A DNA stretch of 64,000 nt from Prasinococcaceae sp. CCMP 1430 (lineage: Eukaryota > Plantae > Prasinodermophyta): the NCBI GenBank assembly GCA_013416795.1, contig RQSC01000014.1, forward strand, positions 141,510-205,509, given 5' to 3'. Of this stretch, positions 22,865 through 56,240 are shown piece by piece; within the stretch, counting starts at the first letter, position 1, and each line of letters starts with the position of its first letter. The notes beneath the pieces were generated by a model that made no database searches, was not told where the DNA came from, and saw only the letters and a list, made by a program, of their open reading frames with translations. Made by a program: the position numbers and the translations under genes.

Positions 22865-24520
22865 TCAGCCCTTCTTCTTGGGCGGTGGCGGGCGCATGCC
22901 CCCCGGCGGTAGCACGATGCCCGTGCCGCCGCTGCCGCCCGCTCCCACGCGGCTGAAGCCGCCGATCTCCGAGAAGTAGCCAGACTCGTCGCCTGCTTTG
23001 GCGCTGCGCATGCCCGGGAGCTGGTTGGGATTGGCGAGCTCGATGCCCTGCACGGGCGTGAAGGCGATCGACGACAGGCCGTGTGTGGCCGTGCCGGACC
23101 CGCCCGGCGCGAAGGTGGGGCCCTTGTACTTGCCCATCTGCTTGCGCTTCTCGAGCTTGGCGCCCAGCTTGGACGCCTTGGCCGTCACGCGCAGGCGTTT
23201 GTTGCCCTCGGTGCCCAGCATGCCCAGCCCCACCATCTCGTCGCCGTCGATGACCTCCTGCTCCTGCTTGCCAAAGGCGAGGCGGTTCTGCGCCTTGGCC
23301 ATCTCGGTGGTGGCGTAGTTCTCCTTGCGCGCGCGCAGGCGCTTGCCGCCGCGTTTCTTGGCTGTCTTTTCTATGGGCGCGGGCAGCGCCTTGGCGACGC
23401 GCGCGGGCGCAGCCTCCTGCCACTTGTCCCCCTTGGCCTGCAGCTGAGCGAGCATGTCGCGGCCGGCTTCCCCCAGCGGCGACGAGCGGCTCGCGTCCAC
23501 GCGTGCCATGAGCGTTGCCTTGCCGCTCAGCACGCGGAACGCCCGCGTGCGCAGAGAGGGCGGCACGCCCTGCACGAAGTCGCTGTGGAAGATGAAGCCG
23601 ACGTGCGGGTTGCTGCCGGCCGTCGCGTTGGTGGACAGGTACTGGCCCTGCATGCGCCCGCCCGACGCACCGCGCTGCTTGCTGCGCGCGTTGCCCAGGG
23701 TCTGCAGGTTGCCGGCCGGCATCCGCGCCAGCGCCTGCAGCGAGCCCGCGGCCGCGATCAGGTTGGATGCGACGGCCGAGCCGACGAGTGCGGTGAGGTT
23801 GGGCGCGATGCGGCAGAGGTTGTCGCTGATGAAGTCCACGATGCGCTTGCGCTGCTCGCCCAGAGCGAGCAGCTCGTCGGCGGCCGCCATCGTCTTGGCG
23901 AGTTGCTCCTCGGAGAGCCTCTCGCCCGCGGTGGTCGTTGCCGTCACGACGAGCACCATAGCGGTCGAGCTCGGCAGGATGGCCGAGAAGTCCAGGTCTG
24001 TGAGGTCGGTCTCGTTGCCGATGGCTTTGACCGTGCGCGCGTAGTCGAGCGGGTCCGTCACCAGCGACTCTAGCTCGCCGAACTTCGGCGCGTACAGCGA
24101 GGTGAGCAGGCCGTGCACAGTGAGCACCTCGGCGTCGACGTCGGCAAGCATGTCGTTGCACTGCGCGATGAGCGCGTACAGCGGCGCGTCGCTATCCAGG
24201 GGCGGCGGCGCAGCACCTGCGGCGGTAGCCGCGGCGGCACGCTTGCTCTCATCCTCGGCCGCCCCCAGCTTGGCTGCGAACGCACCGAACTTGGGCGACC
24301 GCAGCAGCGTCGCGAGCGACCCGAGCGAGCGCTGCGCGGCGGGCGCGGCGACAGCACGCAGCATCGCGGCGTCGCCACCGTCCTCACGCTCGTCCATGTC
24401 GTCGGCGTCGCCGACATCACCCGCCGCGGCCGCGTAGTCCTCCTCCTCCTCGTCCGAGAGCGCATCCAGGTCGTCCAGGAACGACGCTGGCATGACGCCC
24501 GGCGGCTGCTGCTCGGCCAT
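22865..24520 (-). CDS. PRPF31: U4/U6 snRNP protein Prp31
   Basis: SFLDDLDAL, NOSIC/Nop domain (IAPNLTALVGS..MPAGNLQTLG), KKRGGKRLRARKE, NRLAFG, SSIAFTPVQGIEL. Confidence 0.95.
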   Translation of the reverse strand: MAEQQPPGVMPASFLDDLDALSDEEEEDYAAAAGDVGDADDMDEREDGGDAAMLRAVAAPAAQRSLGSLATLLRSPKFGAFAAKLGAAEDESKRAAAATAAGAAPPPLDSDAPLYALIAQCNDMLADVDAEVLTVHGLLTSLYAPKFGELESLVTDPLDYARTVKAIGNETDLTDLDFSAILPSSTAMVLVVTATTTAGERLSEEQLAKTMAAADELLALGEQRKRIVDFISDNLCRIAPNLTALVGSAVASNLIAAAGSLQALARMPAGNLQTLGNARSKQRGASGGRMQGQYLSTNATAGSNPHVGFIFHSDFVQGVPPSLRTRAFRVLSGKATLMARVDASRSSPLGEAGRDMLAQLQAKGDKWQEAAPARVAKALPAPIEKTAKKRGGKRLRARKENYATTEMAKAQNRLAFGKQEQEVIDGDEMVGLGMLGTEGNKRLRVTAKASKLGAKLEKRKQMGKYKGPTFAPGGSGTATHGLSSIAFTPVQGIELANPNQLPGMRSAKAGDESGYFSEIGGFSRVGAGGSGGTGIVLPPGGMRPPPPKKKG

Positions 24521-24587
24521 CGCCGCACCCCGCGCGCCGCCGCCGAGCCTCGCGGCAGCGCGCACCGCTGGACGGTCAGGGTCAGGG

Positions 24588-24923
24588 TCAGGAGAAGCGG
24601 CGGGAGGCCCGAGCGCCCCGACCCACGGCGCGCGCGACGGCTGAAGCAGTATCTCGACCACAGAGAGTGAGGAACGTCATGTCGAACAGCGCAACGTCTG
24701 ACTCAGCGCCGAGCTCTGCGAGCAGCACAGAGCTGGCGCCCTCGGACGACGACCTGGGGGAAAATGGCAGCGAAAGAGACGCGTGCCGCGCGCACTCGCG
24801 TACGAGCAGCCTGAGCAGTGCGGCGTGCACCGAGTGTCCCATTTGCTCGGAACCCTTGCGCATCGCGCAGGCAATGCCTCCTCTCAGAGGCAACGACGGC
24901 CGTGGAGGCGACGGCCAGCGTGN
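24588..24923 (-). CDS. 3' fragment of an unidentified gene, truncated at the N at 24924
   Basis: Open, protein-like frame (HSVHAALLRLLVRECARH..VALFDMTFLTLCG) ending at TGA 24588, just upstream of PRPF31. Confidence 0.3.
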   Translation of the reverse strand, partial: XRWPSPPRPSLPLRGGIACAMRKGSEQMGHSVHAALLRLLVRECARHASLSLPFSPRSSSEGASSVLLAELGAESDVALFDMTFLTLCGRDTASAVARAVGRGARASRRFS

Positions 24924-51021: not shown

Positions 51022-52500
51022 TCACGCGAGCCAGCCGGGCAAAGGCGCGTTCGCGCCGATGAGCGCGGCCGCGTGGCGGCGCTCGAGGCGCAGCACGTCC
51101 TCCTCGAGGACCACGGTGGCCGCTTGCGTGGCCAGCAGCCGTGCGCGCCGCTCCTGCGCGCCGCCCTGCGCGGCGGCCGCCTCCTGCTGGCGTATTTGCG
51201 TGCGCGATAGCGTGACGCCATCTGCAAGCGCGCGCGCACGCGCGAGCGTGCGTCAGGGGCGGCGCGTGAGCTCGCGCGTGGCACGATCACAGCGCGCGCT
51301 GCACGGGTCGATGCGCACGCGCTCGCTAGCGGCGGGGCGCATCGCGCAGCACCCGCACCCTGGGCTTCGAGCTTCGTGAGGCGAACCGGCACTGGCTCGC
51401 TGGCTCGGGCGTGGTAGCCCGGCCTCCAGGTCTCCGGATATGGCAGCACCTCCTGGGGGCGGATCATTTCGTATGCCAGTTTGCGGCTGCGCGGGCGCCG
51501 TCGAGGAGAGCGCCACGCGCGCCAGAACAGTGCCGCCAGGACACGGAATGTTTTTGTTGTGGGGCGTCGGGACAGTCAGCGAAGGCGCGTGGCAGCACGC
51601 GCGGCCCACGCTGTGTCCCTACGGCAAGCGCGGCACGCGCACGCACCCGTATCGTTGCGGCAACCTCTGCCTGTCTACGTTCCACGCGAGTACCCTGAGC
51701 ACCGCCCTTTTGGGAGCGCCGATGAGCGCGCTATCTTGCGGGAAGCCGTCAGCGTCGCGCGCGATGCACTCGGCGATTGTGCGCGACACGTACAGCCCAC
51801 CGCTGTGACCAGCCGCGCCAGCCGCGCCGAAGCTCGACAGCATTGTTTGACCGACTCGATACTCTGTCGCGCCGTCGTAGACGGAGAGGTAGCGCTCGGC
51901 GGCGCCGCCATCATCGCCCCCCGTCACCGCCACCACTTTGTACATGACCTCGGCCCACGAGGGCGGCGCGGTCGGCACGCGGGCTGGGCGCGTCGACGTT
52001 GACACCTCGTAGTCGGCGCGCAGCTGCTGGAGGACGCGCATTCGCTCGCCGGCGTCGGAGTCATCGACAGACCGGCCGAGAGGCGCGCAAGCACGAGGAA
52101 TGCCCGCCGGATCAGGCCGCGCATCGAGCAGACGCATCGCGCTCACGAGCGCCTCGGCCGCCTCTGCCGCGGCTGCGGCAACGACCACGTCACCGCCCGT
52201 GGGCGCCACAGAATCCGCGGGCGCGGCCCGCAAGCCAGCGCCGGCGCGTGCGCGCGCGCCTGCTCCGCCGAGCGTCCTGTCAAGCGTCGCTGACACGCGG
52301 GTCAGCATCGCCTGCGCGTCGCTGCTGAAGTCGTCCCCGCCGCTCTCGTACATCGCGGCAGCGTCGCCCGCGCGCGCAGCCCTCGTGCGCGCCGCGCTTT
52401 CCTCGCCGCCCTCGTCAGCTCCGTCCTCTTCCGCCAGTCGCGCGACCACGCCCTCGAGGGCGTCCAGAAGGCGATCCGCTCCCGCGCCTTCGCCCTCCAT
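51022..52500 (-). CDS. Hypothetical protein, multi-exon
   Basis: Globular segment YKVVA..YLSVYDGATEYRVGQT..HSGGLYV..FPQDSAL. Downstream exons end LPGWLA*. Confidence 0.55.
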
Positions 52501-53125
52501 GGCACCGCGTCTCCCCTCTCCCGCGCCACGGGAACGGGCCACCCCTTCCGCCCACCGCCCCCGCCTTCGCAGTGCGCTCCGCGCTTTGTCCGCGTCGGCG
52601 CGCGAAGCGAAGCAGGGAGCACCGCGCGGGGCGAGGAGAGGCGCCGGGCGCGAGGCGCCCAGCCACCCCCTCCCCTTGTCCTCCGTGTGCCGTGGCCAGG
52701 CAAACCTTGCCGGCCGGCTGCGCTGTGGTGCCAGTCCCGCTGCGCCCCCCCCACCCCCACCCGCCACCGCCCGCCGCGGCCGGGTTTAAATTTTTTGAAA
52801 ACTGGTCCGCCGGTCGGCATTGCGGGGTCACCGCGAGAGCCCACACAGGCAAGTCCCCAGATAAGGGTTTTCATGGGAGGGTTTGCAATGCCACGATCAT
52901 CGACGGTGGACGCACCGGATGCTGGCTGGCGTCCCGAAGGGCGGCGGCGGTCCTGCGAGTCCCGCGGACGGACAGGGCCTCGGCGGACAGGGTTGGATGG
53001 GTGGGCGGGCGATCTTCGCGACGCGAGCGCACGCACGCGCGCAGCACGGGCTGTGCTAGGATGCAAGGAGCTTTAGGCAAAGAGCTCGCGCGCTCGCGGT
53101 GCTGCGCGCTCGCACGCCGCCGGCC

Positions 53126-53190
53126 GGCCATGCGTCGGGCCGCACACCCTGCCCGATGATGGGCTCTGAGGGTGGCGCCGTCATGTGGCC
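53126..53190 (-). promoter_or_regulatory. SECIS-like element (form II) in the 3' UTR of the DsbA/FrnE-like gene
   Basis: Minus strand reads GGCCA-C-AUGAC-GGCGCCACCCU-CAGA-GCCC-AUCAUC-GGGC-AGGGUGUGCGGCC-CGAC-GCA-UGGCC. This gives helix I, a UGAC/CGAC tandem G.A core, an 11-bp helix II with two bulges, and an apical ministem. Confidence 0.75.
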
Positions 53191-53310
53191 GAGCCGCGCG
53201 GCGCTAGCGCGCGTCGAGGCTTGCTCTCGCTCCACGGATTGGCCCAGGGTAGGCCGGGGTCCCCGCGCTGGCGGCGGGCGCATGCCGCCCGGCGGCAGGC
53301 GCGTGCGCAC

Positions 53311-54294
53311 CTACGCGTGCTGGGCGAGGTCGAGCTCCTCGAGCAGCATCTCTCGCGGTATCCGCAGCGCATCAGAGAACAGAAACGCGCCCTCGGCGAA
53401 CTCGTCATCGGCGTGCGCGTTTTCCCCTGCTGCGACGAGACGCTTGGCCTCCTCCTTCTCCATGTCCCTGAAGAGCCGCACAAACTCATCGGCGTGCGCC
53501 GCGCCGCTGAGCATGTACTTGCCATCGATGAGGAACGTCGGGATGGAATTGATGCCCATCTCGCGAAGCATCGCCAGCGCGGCGGCGATCTCATCGGAGC
53601 CTTCGTCCGACTGCAAAAACTCGCGCGCGGCCGCCTCGTCGGCGCCGGCGTGCTCGACGGCCGCCGTCACGAGCATCTCGCGGTCGTTGAGCTTGGCCCC
53701 CTGCTCAAAATGCGTGAAGTTCAGCGCGGCGTACAGCCTTTCGGCCGCCGAAACGCCCAGCGTGCGCGTCACCCACTGCACCATGCGGTGGCTCGCCCAC
53801 GTGTTGCTCGCAATGCGGCGCGCCACGAAGTTCTCGATGCCCACCTCGCGCCCGCGCTCCTTGAGCCCGTGTCGTTTCTTCTGCTCCTCGAACTGCTGCA
53901 CACCTCCCCACTTGCGCCGCAGGCGCTCCAGGTTGGTCTCCTCGAACTCCTCCGAGCGCGGGTAGTCCGGCTCAAGGAAGAAAGGCACTCGCAGGAGCGA
54001 GAACCTCAGGGGCATGCCATCGACGAGCGGCTGCTCAGTGACGCGTCGCATCGCGTTGAGCACGTGGCGCTTGCCGATGTAGCCATTCGGTCACACTGCG
54101 TGCGCACGCGCAGGCGAGGTCAGTCACCGGCCGCAGTAGCACCACGACGAGCGAGCGCGCGTGGGCCGCCGCACGGGTGCGCGCAAAACGCGCCGGCGCG
54201 CGCACGCACTGGTGTCGGAGACGAGCTCCACGGCCACACGGCGGCCGCGCGCCGCCTTGGCGCCGGCTCCTGCGCCCGAGGCAGACGCGGCGGC
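53311..54294 (-). CDS. DsbA/FrnE-like thioredoxin-fold selenoprotein (in-frame TGA at 54091-54093; intron 54096-54209; 5' end in gap)
   Basis: VAVELVSDT-M-U-PNGYIGKR aligns with the FrnE motif SDxxCPWCYIGKR. Also VPFFLEP, NTWASHRMV, HFEQG, GINSIPTFLID..LSGA. Confidence 0.85.
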
Positions 54295-54437
54295 NNNNNN
54301 NNNCCCCCGGGAGCCTGGGCACGGTGAAGCATGCGAGCGCGCTGCTGCAATGGACGCGCGCCGTGCACGCGCGCCTCAGCTTCCGCGTGACGCGCTCCGG
54401 CGCGCTCGGCCTCACCGCCGGCCGGCCCCGCGGCGCG

Positions 54438-56240
54438 ATGGCCACTGCCGCGCCGCCACGCGGCGACGCGATATTGCTGCACGCCGACCTCGATGGCTTC
54501 TACGCGCAAGTTGAGGCGAGGCGACTGGGGCTCGATGCGTCTGTCGCTGCCATCGGCGTGCTGCAGTGGGACTCGCTCATCGCGCTCTCCTACCCGGCCA
54601 AGGGCTGCGGCGTCCGGCGAGGCATGTCCAGCGCCGAGGCGCAGCGGCTTTGCCCGCAGATCACTCTGGCTCACGTGGAGGTGATTTTCACGTCCGGTGA
54701 GGTCGTGGAGGATCTGGTGGCGTACGAGCGTCGCACGGGCCGCCGCCCACGCGGAGAGTGTAAGGCGAGCCTCAGCCGTTACCGCGAGGCGAGCGCCGAG
54801 GTCTTCGATGCGCTCGGCCGTGAGCTGCCCGAGTGCGTGGAGCGCGCGAGCATCGATGAAGCGTACGTGGACGCGAGCGCAGCTGCGGAGGCGCTTCGGG
54901 GACGCGCCAAGGCCGACGGCAGCGCCATCGACACTGTCGCCGGCGGGGGCGCGCGCGACGAATGGGCGATCGTAGGTGGCGCGGCGGGCATCGGCGCCGC
55001 CGACGAGCCCCTCCTACGCGGTGCTCTCGTCGCCGAGCACCTGCGCGCAGTGGTGCGCGAGAAGACTGGCTTCACCATGAGCGTGGGGGTGGCGCGCTCG
55101 CGGCCGCTCGCCAAGCTCGCCTCGAGCCGCCACAAACCCAATCGCGTGTCGCTCGTTCCAGCGGCCGCCGCCCGCGAGCTGCTGAGCGCGGTACGCTTGC
55201 GCGACATCGGCGGCCTGGGCGGCAAGCTGGGCGAGGCAGTTGCGCGCGCGTTTGGGCTGTGCGCCGACGCGACGGCGGCGGAGCTGTGGCGCCATCCTCG
55301 TGAGACGCTGTGCGAGCGCATCGGCGCCGCTCGGGGGAAGTTCGTCTACGATCGCATACGCGGCATCGGTCAGGACAACGTGACTCCGAACCTGCTGGTG
55401 AATTCAGTGAGCGCATGCAAGAGCTTCACGGCGACGTCCGCCCGCCCGGCGCTCGCCAAGTGGATCCGCACGCTCGCAGGAGAGGTGCGCGCGCGCCTTG
55501 AGGCAGAGGCAAACGAGCGCGGGAGAGCGGCGCGCACGCTCGCGCTGCACTTCCGCTTCAGTGGTAGCGCCGGCGCGGCGGGCGGCGAGCGGTCGCGACA
55601 ATGCCGGCTTCCACCCACCCGAGGGACCGTCAGCGAGAGCGCGCTGGACGCGGCGTGCGAGAAGCTCCTCGACAGTGCTCTCGCGGCCGTGGCAGGCGCA
55701 CCCTTGTCGCGGCTGGCCCTGACTGCGAAAGACTTCGAGGTGTTGAGCGGCGGTGGCGTGGGCGGCGCGGGAGCGCTCGAGACGCTCTGGAAGGGGAAGT
55801 CCGCTGCATGCACCCCCGCGCCACGCGACGGTCAGCCCGCCGAGCCCGAGGTGGGCAGCGACGAACTTGCCCTCGAGGCCGAGGCGGCTGAAGGAGACGG
55901 GGCGCTCGACGTTGCCGCACCCGTCAGCAGGGATTCAAGGCCTAGCCTTTCGGGCGATGCGGGCGCGAGCGCGAGCGCGAGCGGTGCGCCCGTCGCCGGG
56001 GCTCTTCGCCCGGCGCCATCAGCTTCGCCTGACGAGTTCGATCTCGCGGGCGTCGACGCGGCCGAGCAGCGGCTCATCCTGAAGGCTTTAGAGCACGACA
56101 GGGAGCGTGGCGCGTCCAAGCGATCTCTCGTCGACCCGAGCGGCCGCGTCAGTGTTGGCGGCGCCAGCAAGCGCACGCGCAGGAAGGGCGGCGGACGGCA
56201 GGTGAGCGTGGCAGCCTTCTTCGCGCCCAAGCGGCCATAG
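54438..56240 (+). CDS. POLH: Y-family DNA polymerase eta
   Basis: HADLDGFYAQVE, VLQW..IALSYPAK, KASLSRYR, ERASIDEAY, KLASSRHKPN, GGLGGKLG, and a C-terminal PIP box QVSVAAFF. Confidence 0.88.
   Translation: MATAAPPRGDAILLHADLDGFYAQVEARRLGLDASVAAIGVLQWDSLIALSYPAKGCGVRRGMSSAEAQRLCPQITLAHVEVIFTSGEVVEDLVAYERRTGRRPRGECKASLSRYREASAEVFDALGRELPECVERASIDEAYVDASAAAEALRGRAKADGSAIDTVAGGGARDEWAIVGGAAGIGAADEPLLRGALVAEHLRAVVREKTGFTMSVGVARSRPLAKLASSRHKPNRVSLVPAAAARELLSAVRLRDIGGLGGKLGEAVARAFGLCADATAAELWRHPRETLCERIGAARGKFVYDRIRGIGQDNVTPNLLVNSVSACKSFTATSARPALAKWIRTLAGEVRARLEAEANERGRAARTLALHFRFSGSAGAAGGERSRQCRLPPTRGTVSESALDAACEKLLDSALAAVAGAPLSRLALTAKDFEVLSGGGVGGAGALETLWKGKSAACTPAPRDGQPAEPEVGSDELALEAEAAEGDGALDVAAPVSRDSRPSLSGDAGASASASGAPVAGALRPAPSASPDEFDLAGVDAAEQRLILKALEHDRERGASKRSLVDPSGRVSVGGASKRTRRKGGGRQVSVAAFFAPKRP

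Follow-up and report, generated by a model that had tools for sequence, protein, structure and literature searches.

The question raised by this locus is whether a TGA codon that stands directly behind an intron, in frame with a long open reading frame (ORF), ends translation or is read as selenocysteine (Sec, U). The locus lies on the minus strand of a stretch of 64,000 nucleotides (nt) from Prasinococcaceae sp. CCMP 1430 (contig RQSC01000014.1 of assembly GCA_013416795.1, forward-strand positions 141,510 to 205,509), which was analyzed as a whole and is called the window below, all coordinates being positions within it. An original prediction, made from the letters alone, had proposed that splicing brings the TGA to the position of the first catalytic Cys of an FrnE/DsbA-like oxidoreductase and that the gene encodes a selenoprotein. 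Our analysis leads us, with high confidence, to regard the locus as an expressed two-exon nuclear gene for a thioredoxin-fold selenoprotein of the DsbA/FrnE branch.

The gene model, as far as it is visible in the window, consists of the following parts.

54210..54294, minus strand: visible part of exon 1, an Ala/Arg/Gly/Ser-rich presequence ending in ...RRVAVELVSDT, and the first base of a Met codon

54096..54209, minus strand: intron of 114 nt, phase 1, GT..AG

53311..54095, minus strand: exon 2, which completes the Met codon and continues with the Sec codon, 259 codons of the DsbA/FrnE fold and the TAG stop at 53313-53311

Exon 1 closes with GTG GAG CTC GTC TCC GAC ACC A, its last base at 54210, and exon 2 opens with TG TGA CCG AAT GGC TAC ATC GGC AAG CGC, the spliced frame being ...VELVSDT-M-TGA-PNG-YIGKR.... 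The intron displays the donor GTGCGT (54209-54204), a CTGAC (54123-54119) at a distance of 23 nt from the acceptor, and the acceptor CAG (54098-54096), which contains the sole AG of the intron. For evidence from RNA, four RNA-type runs were used in the form of contigs aligned to 52800-54500, which are uninformative on expression level and transcript ends. A marine metatranscriptome contig of 577 nt (X2) covers 53564-54095 and resumes at 54210-54254, skipping exactly 114 nt, and the borders of this gap read CT..AC on the plus strand, i.e. GT..AG on the gene strand. From a culture transcriptome comes a contig of 945 nt (X1), which aligns at 53161-54095 and has 10 loose letters that, once reverse-complemented, equal the final 10 bases of exon 1. 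The messenger RNA is spliced at 54210|54095 and the gene is expressed; the intron stands in letters and coordinates as it had been proposed, its junction being seen as a joint in X2 and as a loose end in X1. No other acceptor was found in any RNA contig over 52800-54500, and an alternative acceptor bypassing the TGA is ruled out, the intron having no internal AG and both contigs using 54096.

The codon under study is conserved far beyond this genome.

54091..54093, minus strand: in-frame TGA, very probably read as Sec; TGA in 33 of 33 versions, aligned with the first Cys of C-P-x-C

Homologues were collected by a word search, which yielded 193 relatives, with 120 matches listed; as named, they come from Hemiselmis, Guillardia, Haptolina and MMETSP transcriptomes (marine algae) as well as from metagenomes. 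All 120 matches listed begin, with a Met or as a partial start, just past the YIGKR column and none begins upstream of it, which is the truncation by gene callers that had been foreseen; the public gene call at the locus itself comprises 246 residues from the internal Met 54051 and is devoid of the catalytic residue. The DNA of 83 homologous loci was read upstream in frame, the upstream columns having played no part in the selection of the loci. An in-frame TGA followed by P-N-G-[Y/F/A]-I-G-K was present in 80 of the 83, and a recurrence of codon and flanks on this scale is not due to chance. Counted as different 60-nt sequences, there are 33 distinct versions, all of which keep the TGA. Upstream of it the residues are E (33 versions), L (32), V or I, S (33), D (33), T (32) and M (33), with Ser spelled by six codons from both of its codon families and Leu likewise by six; downstream, P, N, G, I, G, K and R each occur in 33 of 33, their codons varying synonymously. 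The UGA codon and both of its flanks are conserved across the family, several members of which also terminate their reading frame with TGA.

Forms of the protein with Cys at this position came from a tblastn search of the piece downstream of the TGA against plasmids, the alignments starting at query residue 1.

54082..54093, minus strand: active-site tetrad U-P-N-G, which replaces C-P-W/F-C directly before helix alpha-1 (YIGKRH...)

Four plasmid-borne bacterial DsbA-family oxidoreductases read I-[DE]-V-[VW]-S-D-[VY]-[VM]-C|P-[WF]-C-Y-[LI]-G-K-[KR], and the counterpart in the window is V-E-L-V-S-D-T-(M)-U|P-N-G-Y-I-G-K-R, so that the TGA falls on the nucleophilic first Cys and Gly takes the place of the second. 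The proposed assignment of the TGA to the first catalytic Cys column is borne out by this alignment, in which Cys pairs with TGA. The original prediction had further described the loss of the resolving Cys as an unusual trait of a monothiol-like enzyme. Gly does occupy that position and no Cys is conserved, but the trait is not special to this gene: as judged from the sequences, U-P-N-G is invariant across the whole algal clade fetched (33 of 33 distinct versions), and a dithiol C-x-x-C or U-x-x-C pair is absent. At no alignment column does Cys occur in more than 6 of 34 sequences, and the window protein holds none after the Sec, as do 55 of the 120 homologues listed. A resolving Cys contributed by the presequence was rejected, the Cys residues of the presequences not being conserved. 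With no dithiol pair, the fold and descent of the family are kept and its dithiol chemistry is not.

Two side observations concern the intron. At 54127..54144 (minus strand), within the intron, the exon-1 frame gives ...S-S-W-C-Y-C-G-R followed by TGA, which resembles the canonical Cys-type (C-P-)W-C-Y-x-G-K/R and lies 17 codons ahead of U-P-N-G-Y-I-G-K-R; no second match to W-C-Y-x-G-[KR] turned up in a six-frame translation of the 64-kb window, and the intron length of 114 is divisible by 3. The motif may descend from a Cys-type exon or be coincidental. Most homologues possess no intron near the Sec codon; in one of them (L001, P0025) the acceptor apparently lies just ahead of the G-Y-I-G-K-R codons (L001:1-120), so that the intron position near the Sec codon appears to vary between lineages.

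Searches and fold prediction used the piece downstream of the TGA alone, and the model is thus devoid of strand beta-1 and of the Sec. This piece matches the Pfam family DSBA (PF01323; E 7.6e-11, 42.6 bits against a gathering threshold of 25.6) and, among solved structures, the sequence of Deinococcus radiodurans FrnE (5cnw, E 2.7e-8) and also SCO1869. The AlphaFold model (33 homologues) reached a mean predicted local distance difference test score of 88.6 and a predicted template modelling (TM) score of 0.87, and its first helix begins at post-Sec residue 5. FrnE structures (5co3/5coh) were the top Foldseek matches with TM 0.62-0.71 and E ~1e-6, HCCA isomerase, kappa GST and classical DsbAs following far below.

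53539..53544, minus strand: Ile-Pro of the predicted cis-Pro loop (GINSIPTF); I183/P184 invariant in the family alignment

The loop aligns with GITGVPFF of FrnE. Nothing in NCBIfam approached threshold, and a pattern scan of genome contigs found no close bacterial or archaeal relative. By its predicted fold and by descent as traced from sequence, the product belongs to the DsbA/FrnE family.

Reading the TGA as Sec would call for a selenocysteine insertion sequence (SECIS) in the 3' untranslated region (UTR), where one candidate was found.

53125..53194, minus strand: candidate form-2 SECIS, AUGA at 53184-53181 and GA at 53136-53135, 126 nt past the stop

No [AG]UGA other than this AUGA occurs within 400 nt past the stop, and the surrounding 91 nt fold with a minimum free energy of -58.7 kcal/mol (z -4.05), which none of 200 shuffles equalled. 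The hairpin is built from helix I (GGCCA/UGGCC), the AUGA opposite GA, and helix II of about 12 bp, topped by an internal loop C-A-G-A, a 4-bp mini-helix (GCCC/GGGC) and a 6-nt apical loop AUCAUC, which is a form-2 layout. Equivalent [AG]UGA...AA(A/G)...GA hairpins lie 28-276 nt past the stops of homologues, most of them with an unpaired A-A-(A/G) 12 nt after the UGA; the C-A-G-A of the window hairpin is common to three homologues (L033, L011, L022). Two covariance models were built, R1 from 15 homologue hairpins and no window sequence, R2 from 26 sequences, likewise of homologues only, the structure of helix II being set by hand and then checked by pair counts. Given MAFFT alignments of hairpins from the homologues, RNAalifold recovered just 3 pairs. 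On the model-fitted alignment, which by its fitting is inclined towards the structure, 9 of 10 pairs show compensatory changes and 78% of cells are paired, against at most 54% when the register is slid. When both strands of 36 homologue loci were searched (146 kb), R1 gave 26 hits, every one of them on the gene strand past the stop, with scores of 12-32 bits on loci outside training, eight of them at 15-27.5. In the window, 53194-53125 (minus strand) scores 16.3 bits (E 0.017) with R1 and 17.5 bits (E 0.006) with R2, ranking second in 128 kb for both. Rank 1 for both is 23198-23141 (minus strand, 18.7 bits with R1), almost certainly a false positive as a SECIS, within the Prp31_C coding region of a Nop/Prp31 gene (ORF 22865-24661). 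Strain variants among environmental contigs occur in the intron and the 3'UTR (here at 53261, 53256, 53245 as an indel, 53160, 53144, 53114 and 53104) and nowhere in exon 2. Only two of these single-nucleotide polymorphisms (SNPs) fall within the hairpin, both at unpaired positions, one in the apical loop (53160) and one at a bulged base (53144), where the T of the window is C in the five other contigs covering the site. The proposal that the TGA is read as Sec is supported by the conservation on both of its sides together with this SECIS-like hairpin.

The 5' end of the gene meets a gap in the assembly.

54295..54303, no strand: run of 9 Ns, where the first 15 codons of exon 1, the start codon included, are missing

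Six independent conspecific contigs (L085-L090) match 51809-54294 at 98.4-99.9% identity, carry exactly the called protein and diverge completely from the window above the N-run. One of them, L090, holds 387 bases above the gap that match nowhere in the window, so that the N-run stands for 387 bases or more, either as a genuine gap or as a mis-join. An in-frame ATG lies 45 nt above 54294 in these contigs, and exon 1 hence comprises 43 codons and 1 nt, beginning with M-R-A-S-V-A-R-L. The originally predicted gene is right in letters and coordinates, with one correction: exon 1 is incomplete in the window, its ATG being hidden by the N-run. Arg, Ala, Ser and Thr abound in the presequences of this gene (40-odd residues) and of its homologues, and the Arg/Ala/Ser-rich N-terminal extension suggests, from its composition, an organellar transit peptide.

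Several points weigh against a selenoprotein gene served by the hairpin at 53194-53125. The window offers no in-frame ATG between the N-run and the donor, the start codon lying outside it. ARAGORN found no tRNA in the 64-kb window, and tRNA-Sec, SBP2 and eEFSec were not searched for. Catalysis by a single selenol, reduction by an external partner and placement in an organelle, all set out below, are parts of the picture that we infer. The remaining points concern the hairpin. Rfam, scanned over 52300-54400 to an E of 10, returned two chance hits but no SECIS family, and the apical motif is A-G-A, not the canonical A-A. The three RNA contigs that reach the 3'UTR stop inside the hairpin (53161, 53174 and 53177) and carry no poly(A) letters, ends that we take to reflect coverage lost where a GC-rich stem of high stability lies close to the 3' end. 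The scores with the covariance models are modest and are exceeded by that of the coding-region false positive, the homologue-built model being of limited specificity in GC-rich DNA. These hairpin points would favour a genuine selenoprotein with its SECIS elsewhere in the 3'UTR or in another structure. However, the hairpin contains the sole [AG]UGA over those 400 nt and folds with a markedly low z, its position, strand and architecture agree with the elements of the homologues, and its paired positions are free of strain SNPs, and we consider a SECIS other than this hairpin improbable.

Much less room is left for an ordinary stop codon, with a product of 246 residues from Met 54051 that would be a DsbA domain without an active site. 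Every database entry is annotated in this way (120 matches listed), but invariant residues with synonymous changes lie upstream of the TGA, in frame, in 33 versions, an upstream ATG and a presequence exist, and the truncated product would lose strand beta-1 together with the catalytic residue; the explanation is very improbable. Equally slight is the chance of a decaying pseudogene or of an assembly or sequencing error for a true TGC or TGT, since, although the locus borders an assembly gap, the TGA is present in six independent contigs and in RNA-derived contigs, exon 2 is without strain polymorphism where intron and UTR are polymorphic, and the gene is expressed.

Under the selenoprotein reading, which we retain, UGA 54093-54091 would be recoded to Sec by the form-2 SECIS hairpin 126 nt past the TAG, and the selenolate, placed at the N-terminus of helix alpha-1 beside the cis-Pro loop, would be the sole redox centre. 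With Gly at the second Cys position, no conserved Cys and none after the Sec, a single-selenol catalyst is expected. The attack of the selenolate would be directed at a disulfide, at a target that is glutathionylated or sulfenylated, or at a peroxide, and would leave an Se-S or Se-OH intermediate for an external thiol, e.g. glutathione or thioredoxin, to resolve, an intramolecular bond not being possible, unlike in C-x-x-C DsbA/FrnE. Resolution of this kind is modelled by analogy on monothiol glutaredoxins, 1-Cys enzymes and Ser-type kappa GST/HCCA isomerases. The enzyme would be organellar by means of its N-terminal transit peptide. Lacking the dithiol that defines its family, the protein is probably mislabelled as a "disulfide isomerase". 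It is tentatively conceivable, at slightly less than an even chance, that the U-P-N-G clade, which is widespread in marine algae, forms a distinct organelle-targeted class within the DsbA/FrnE fold, with one redox-active Sec that works with an external thiol (glutathione or thioredoxin) or as a peroxidase/deglutathionylase, not as the disulfide oxidoreductase/isomerase implied by its annotation; the papers searched do not make this point.

Selenoproteins of this kind have precedents. Sec-DsbA was described from Micromonas pusilla, Ciona and amphioxus, with U(or C)XXC as the label of the site and a Sec exon mis-annotated as UTR (PMC2874816), and from further marine invertebrates (PMC3473315); the family is called FrnE in Selenoprofiles/SelenoDB (SelenoDB 2.0, PMC3965025) and Sec-DsbA/FrnE is among the most widely distributed algal selenoproteins (PMC7539508). 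The existence of Sec-containing FrnE/DsbA proteins in algae, on which the prediction had drawn, is established (PMC2874816, PMC6627142, PMC7539508). The window gene resembles these eukaryotic proteins in fold, in Sec at the first Cys, in its candidate form-2 SECIS in the 3'UTR and in the mis-annotation of the Sec exon as UTR. It differs from them in the site, which is published as U(C)XXC, whereas the window gene and the fetched algal homologues have U-P-N-G and no second Cys; a full-text literature search found no published mention of a U-P-N-G or UXXG selenoprotein site for DsbA. A survey of Archaeplastida reported Sec-FrnE in Mamiellophyceae and Mesostigma, "but not in any other" genome (PMC6627142), whereas the copy in the window is apparently from Prasinoderma. 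The P. coloniale genome paper states many selenoproteins and, as far as its running text goes, names none of them (PMC7455551).

Bacterial DsbA-like selenoproteins were reported as UXXC (PMC1088965), and a review adds a second form, "DxxUP" (PMC13188914). Those from the Sargasso Sea/GOS share PF01323 and the Sec at the first redox position, and the D-x-x-U-P spacing of the second form equals D-T-M-U-P in the window protein. In contrast to the algal gene, their SECIS lies within the coding region; the first form retains the second Cys and the second is listed as a crotonase-family fusion.

FrnE (5CNW, 5CO3, 5COH, 5XWH) and SCO1869 (3GL5) provide the best match in sequence and predicted fold and have the cis-Pro loop and the helical insertion in common with the algal protein. 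The bacterial DsbA-family plasmid proteins read C-P-W/F-C at the site, whereas the algal protein has Sec without a second Cys. FrnE itself possesses C-P-W-C plus a C-terminal Cys pair, unlike the algal protein, the conserved C-terminal tail of which is Cys-free. Kappa-class GST and HCCA isomerase use a single catalytic Ser instead of C-x-x-C, with glutathione as the thiol. These enzymes (1R4W, 3RPN, 2IMD) share the PF01323 superfamily fold and provide the analogy by which a site lacking the resolving Cys can be understood, but they differ by catalytic Ser in place of Sec, and their fold match (E 0.02-0.08) is far behind that of FrnE.

Beyond the gap, 54438-56237 (plus strand) holds a divergent Y-family DNA polymerase gene (impB/mucB/samB, IMS_C, Pol eta/Rev1 helix-hairpin-helix). 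Downstream on the same strand as the selenoprotein gene, 51622-52767 (minus strand) is an ORF of 382 codons without a Pfam match; environmental contigs call a gene of >415 residues at this locus, likewise without a Pfam hit.

The Sec-DsbA/FrnE family is already known in marine algae, and the window gene is a further member of it. What is added is modest, namely a clade-wide single-selenol U-P-N-G site and a gene model with its start codon in an assembly gap, correct annotation requiring the Sec codon, one intron and a start codon within that gap. The range of Sec-FrnE/DsbA is extended, apparently to Prasinoderma, the third green-plant phylum, outside the lineages of the 2019 Archaeplastida survey. 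With an invariant Gly at the resolving position and no conserved Cys, the textbook DsbA dithiol cycle is impossible for this abundant marine family, and the Gly at that position provides a concrete hypothesis on the chemistry of this family of selenoproteins.

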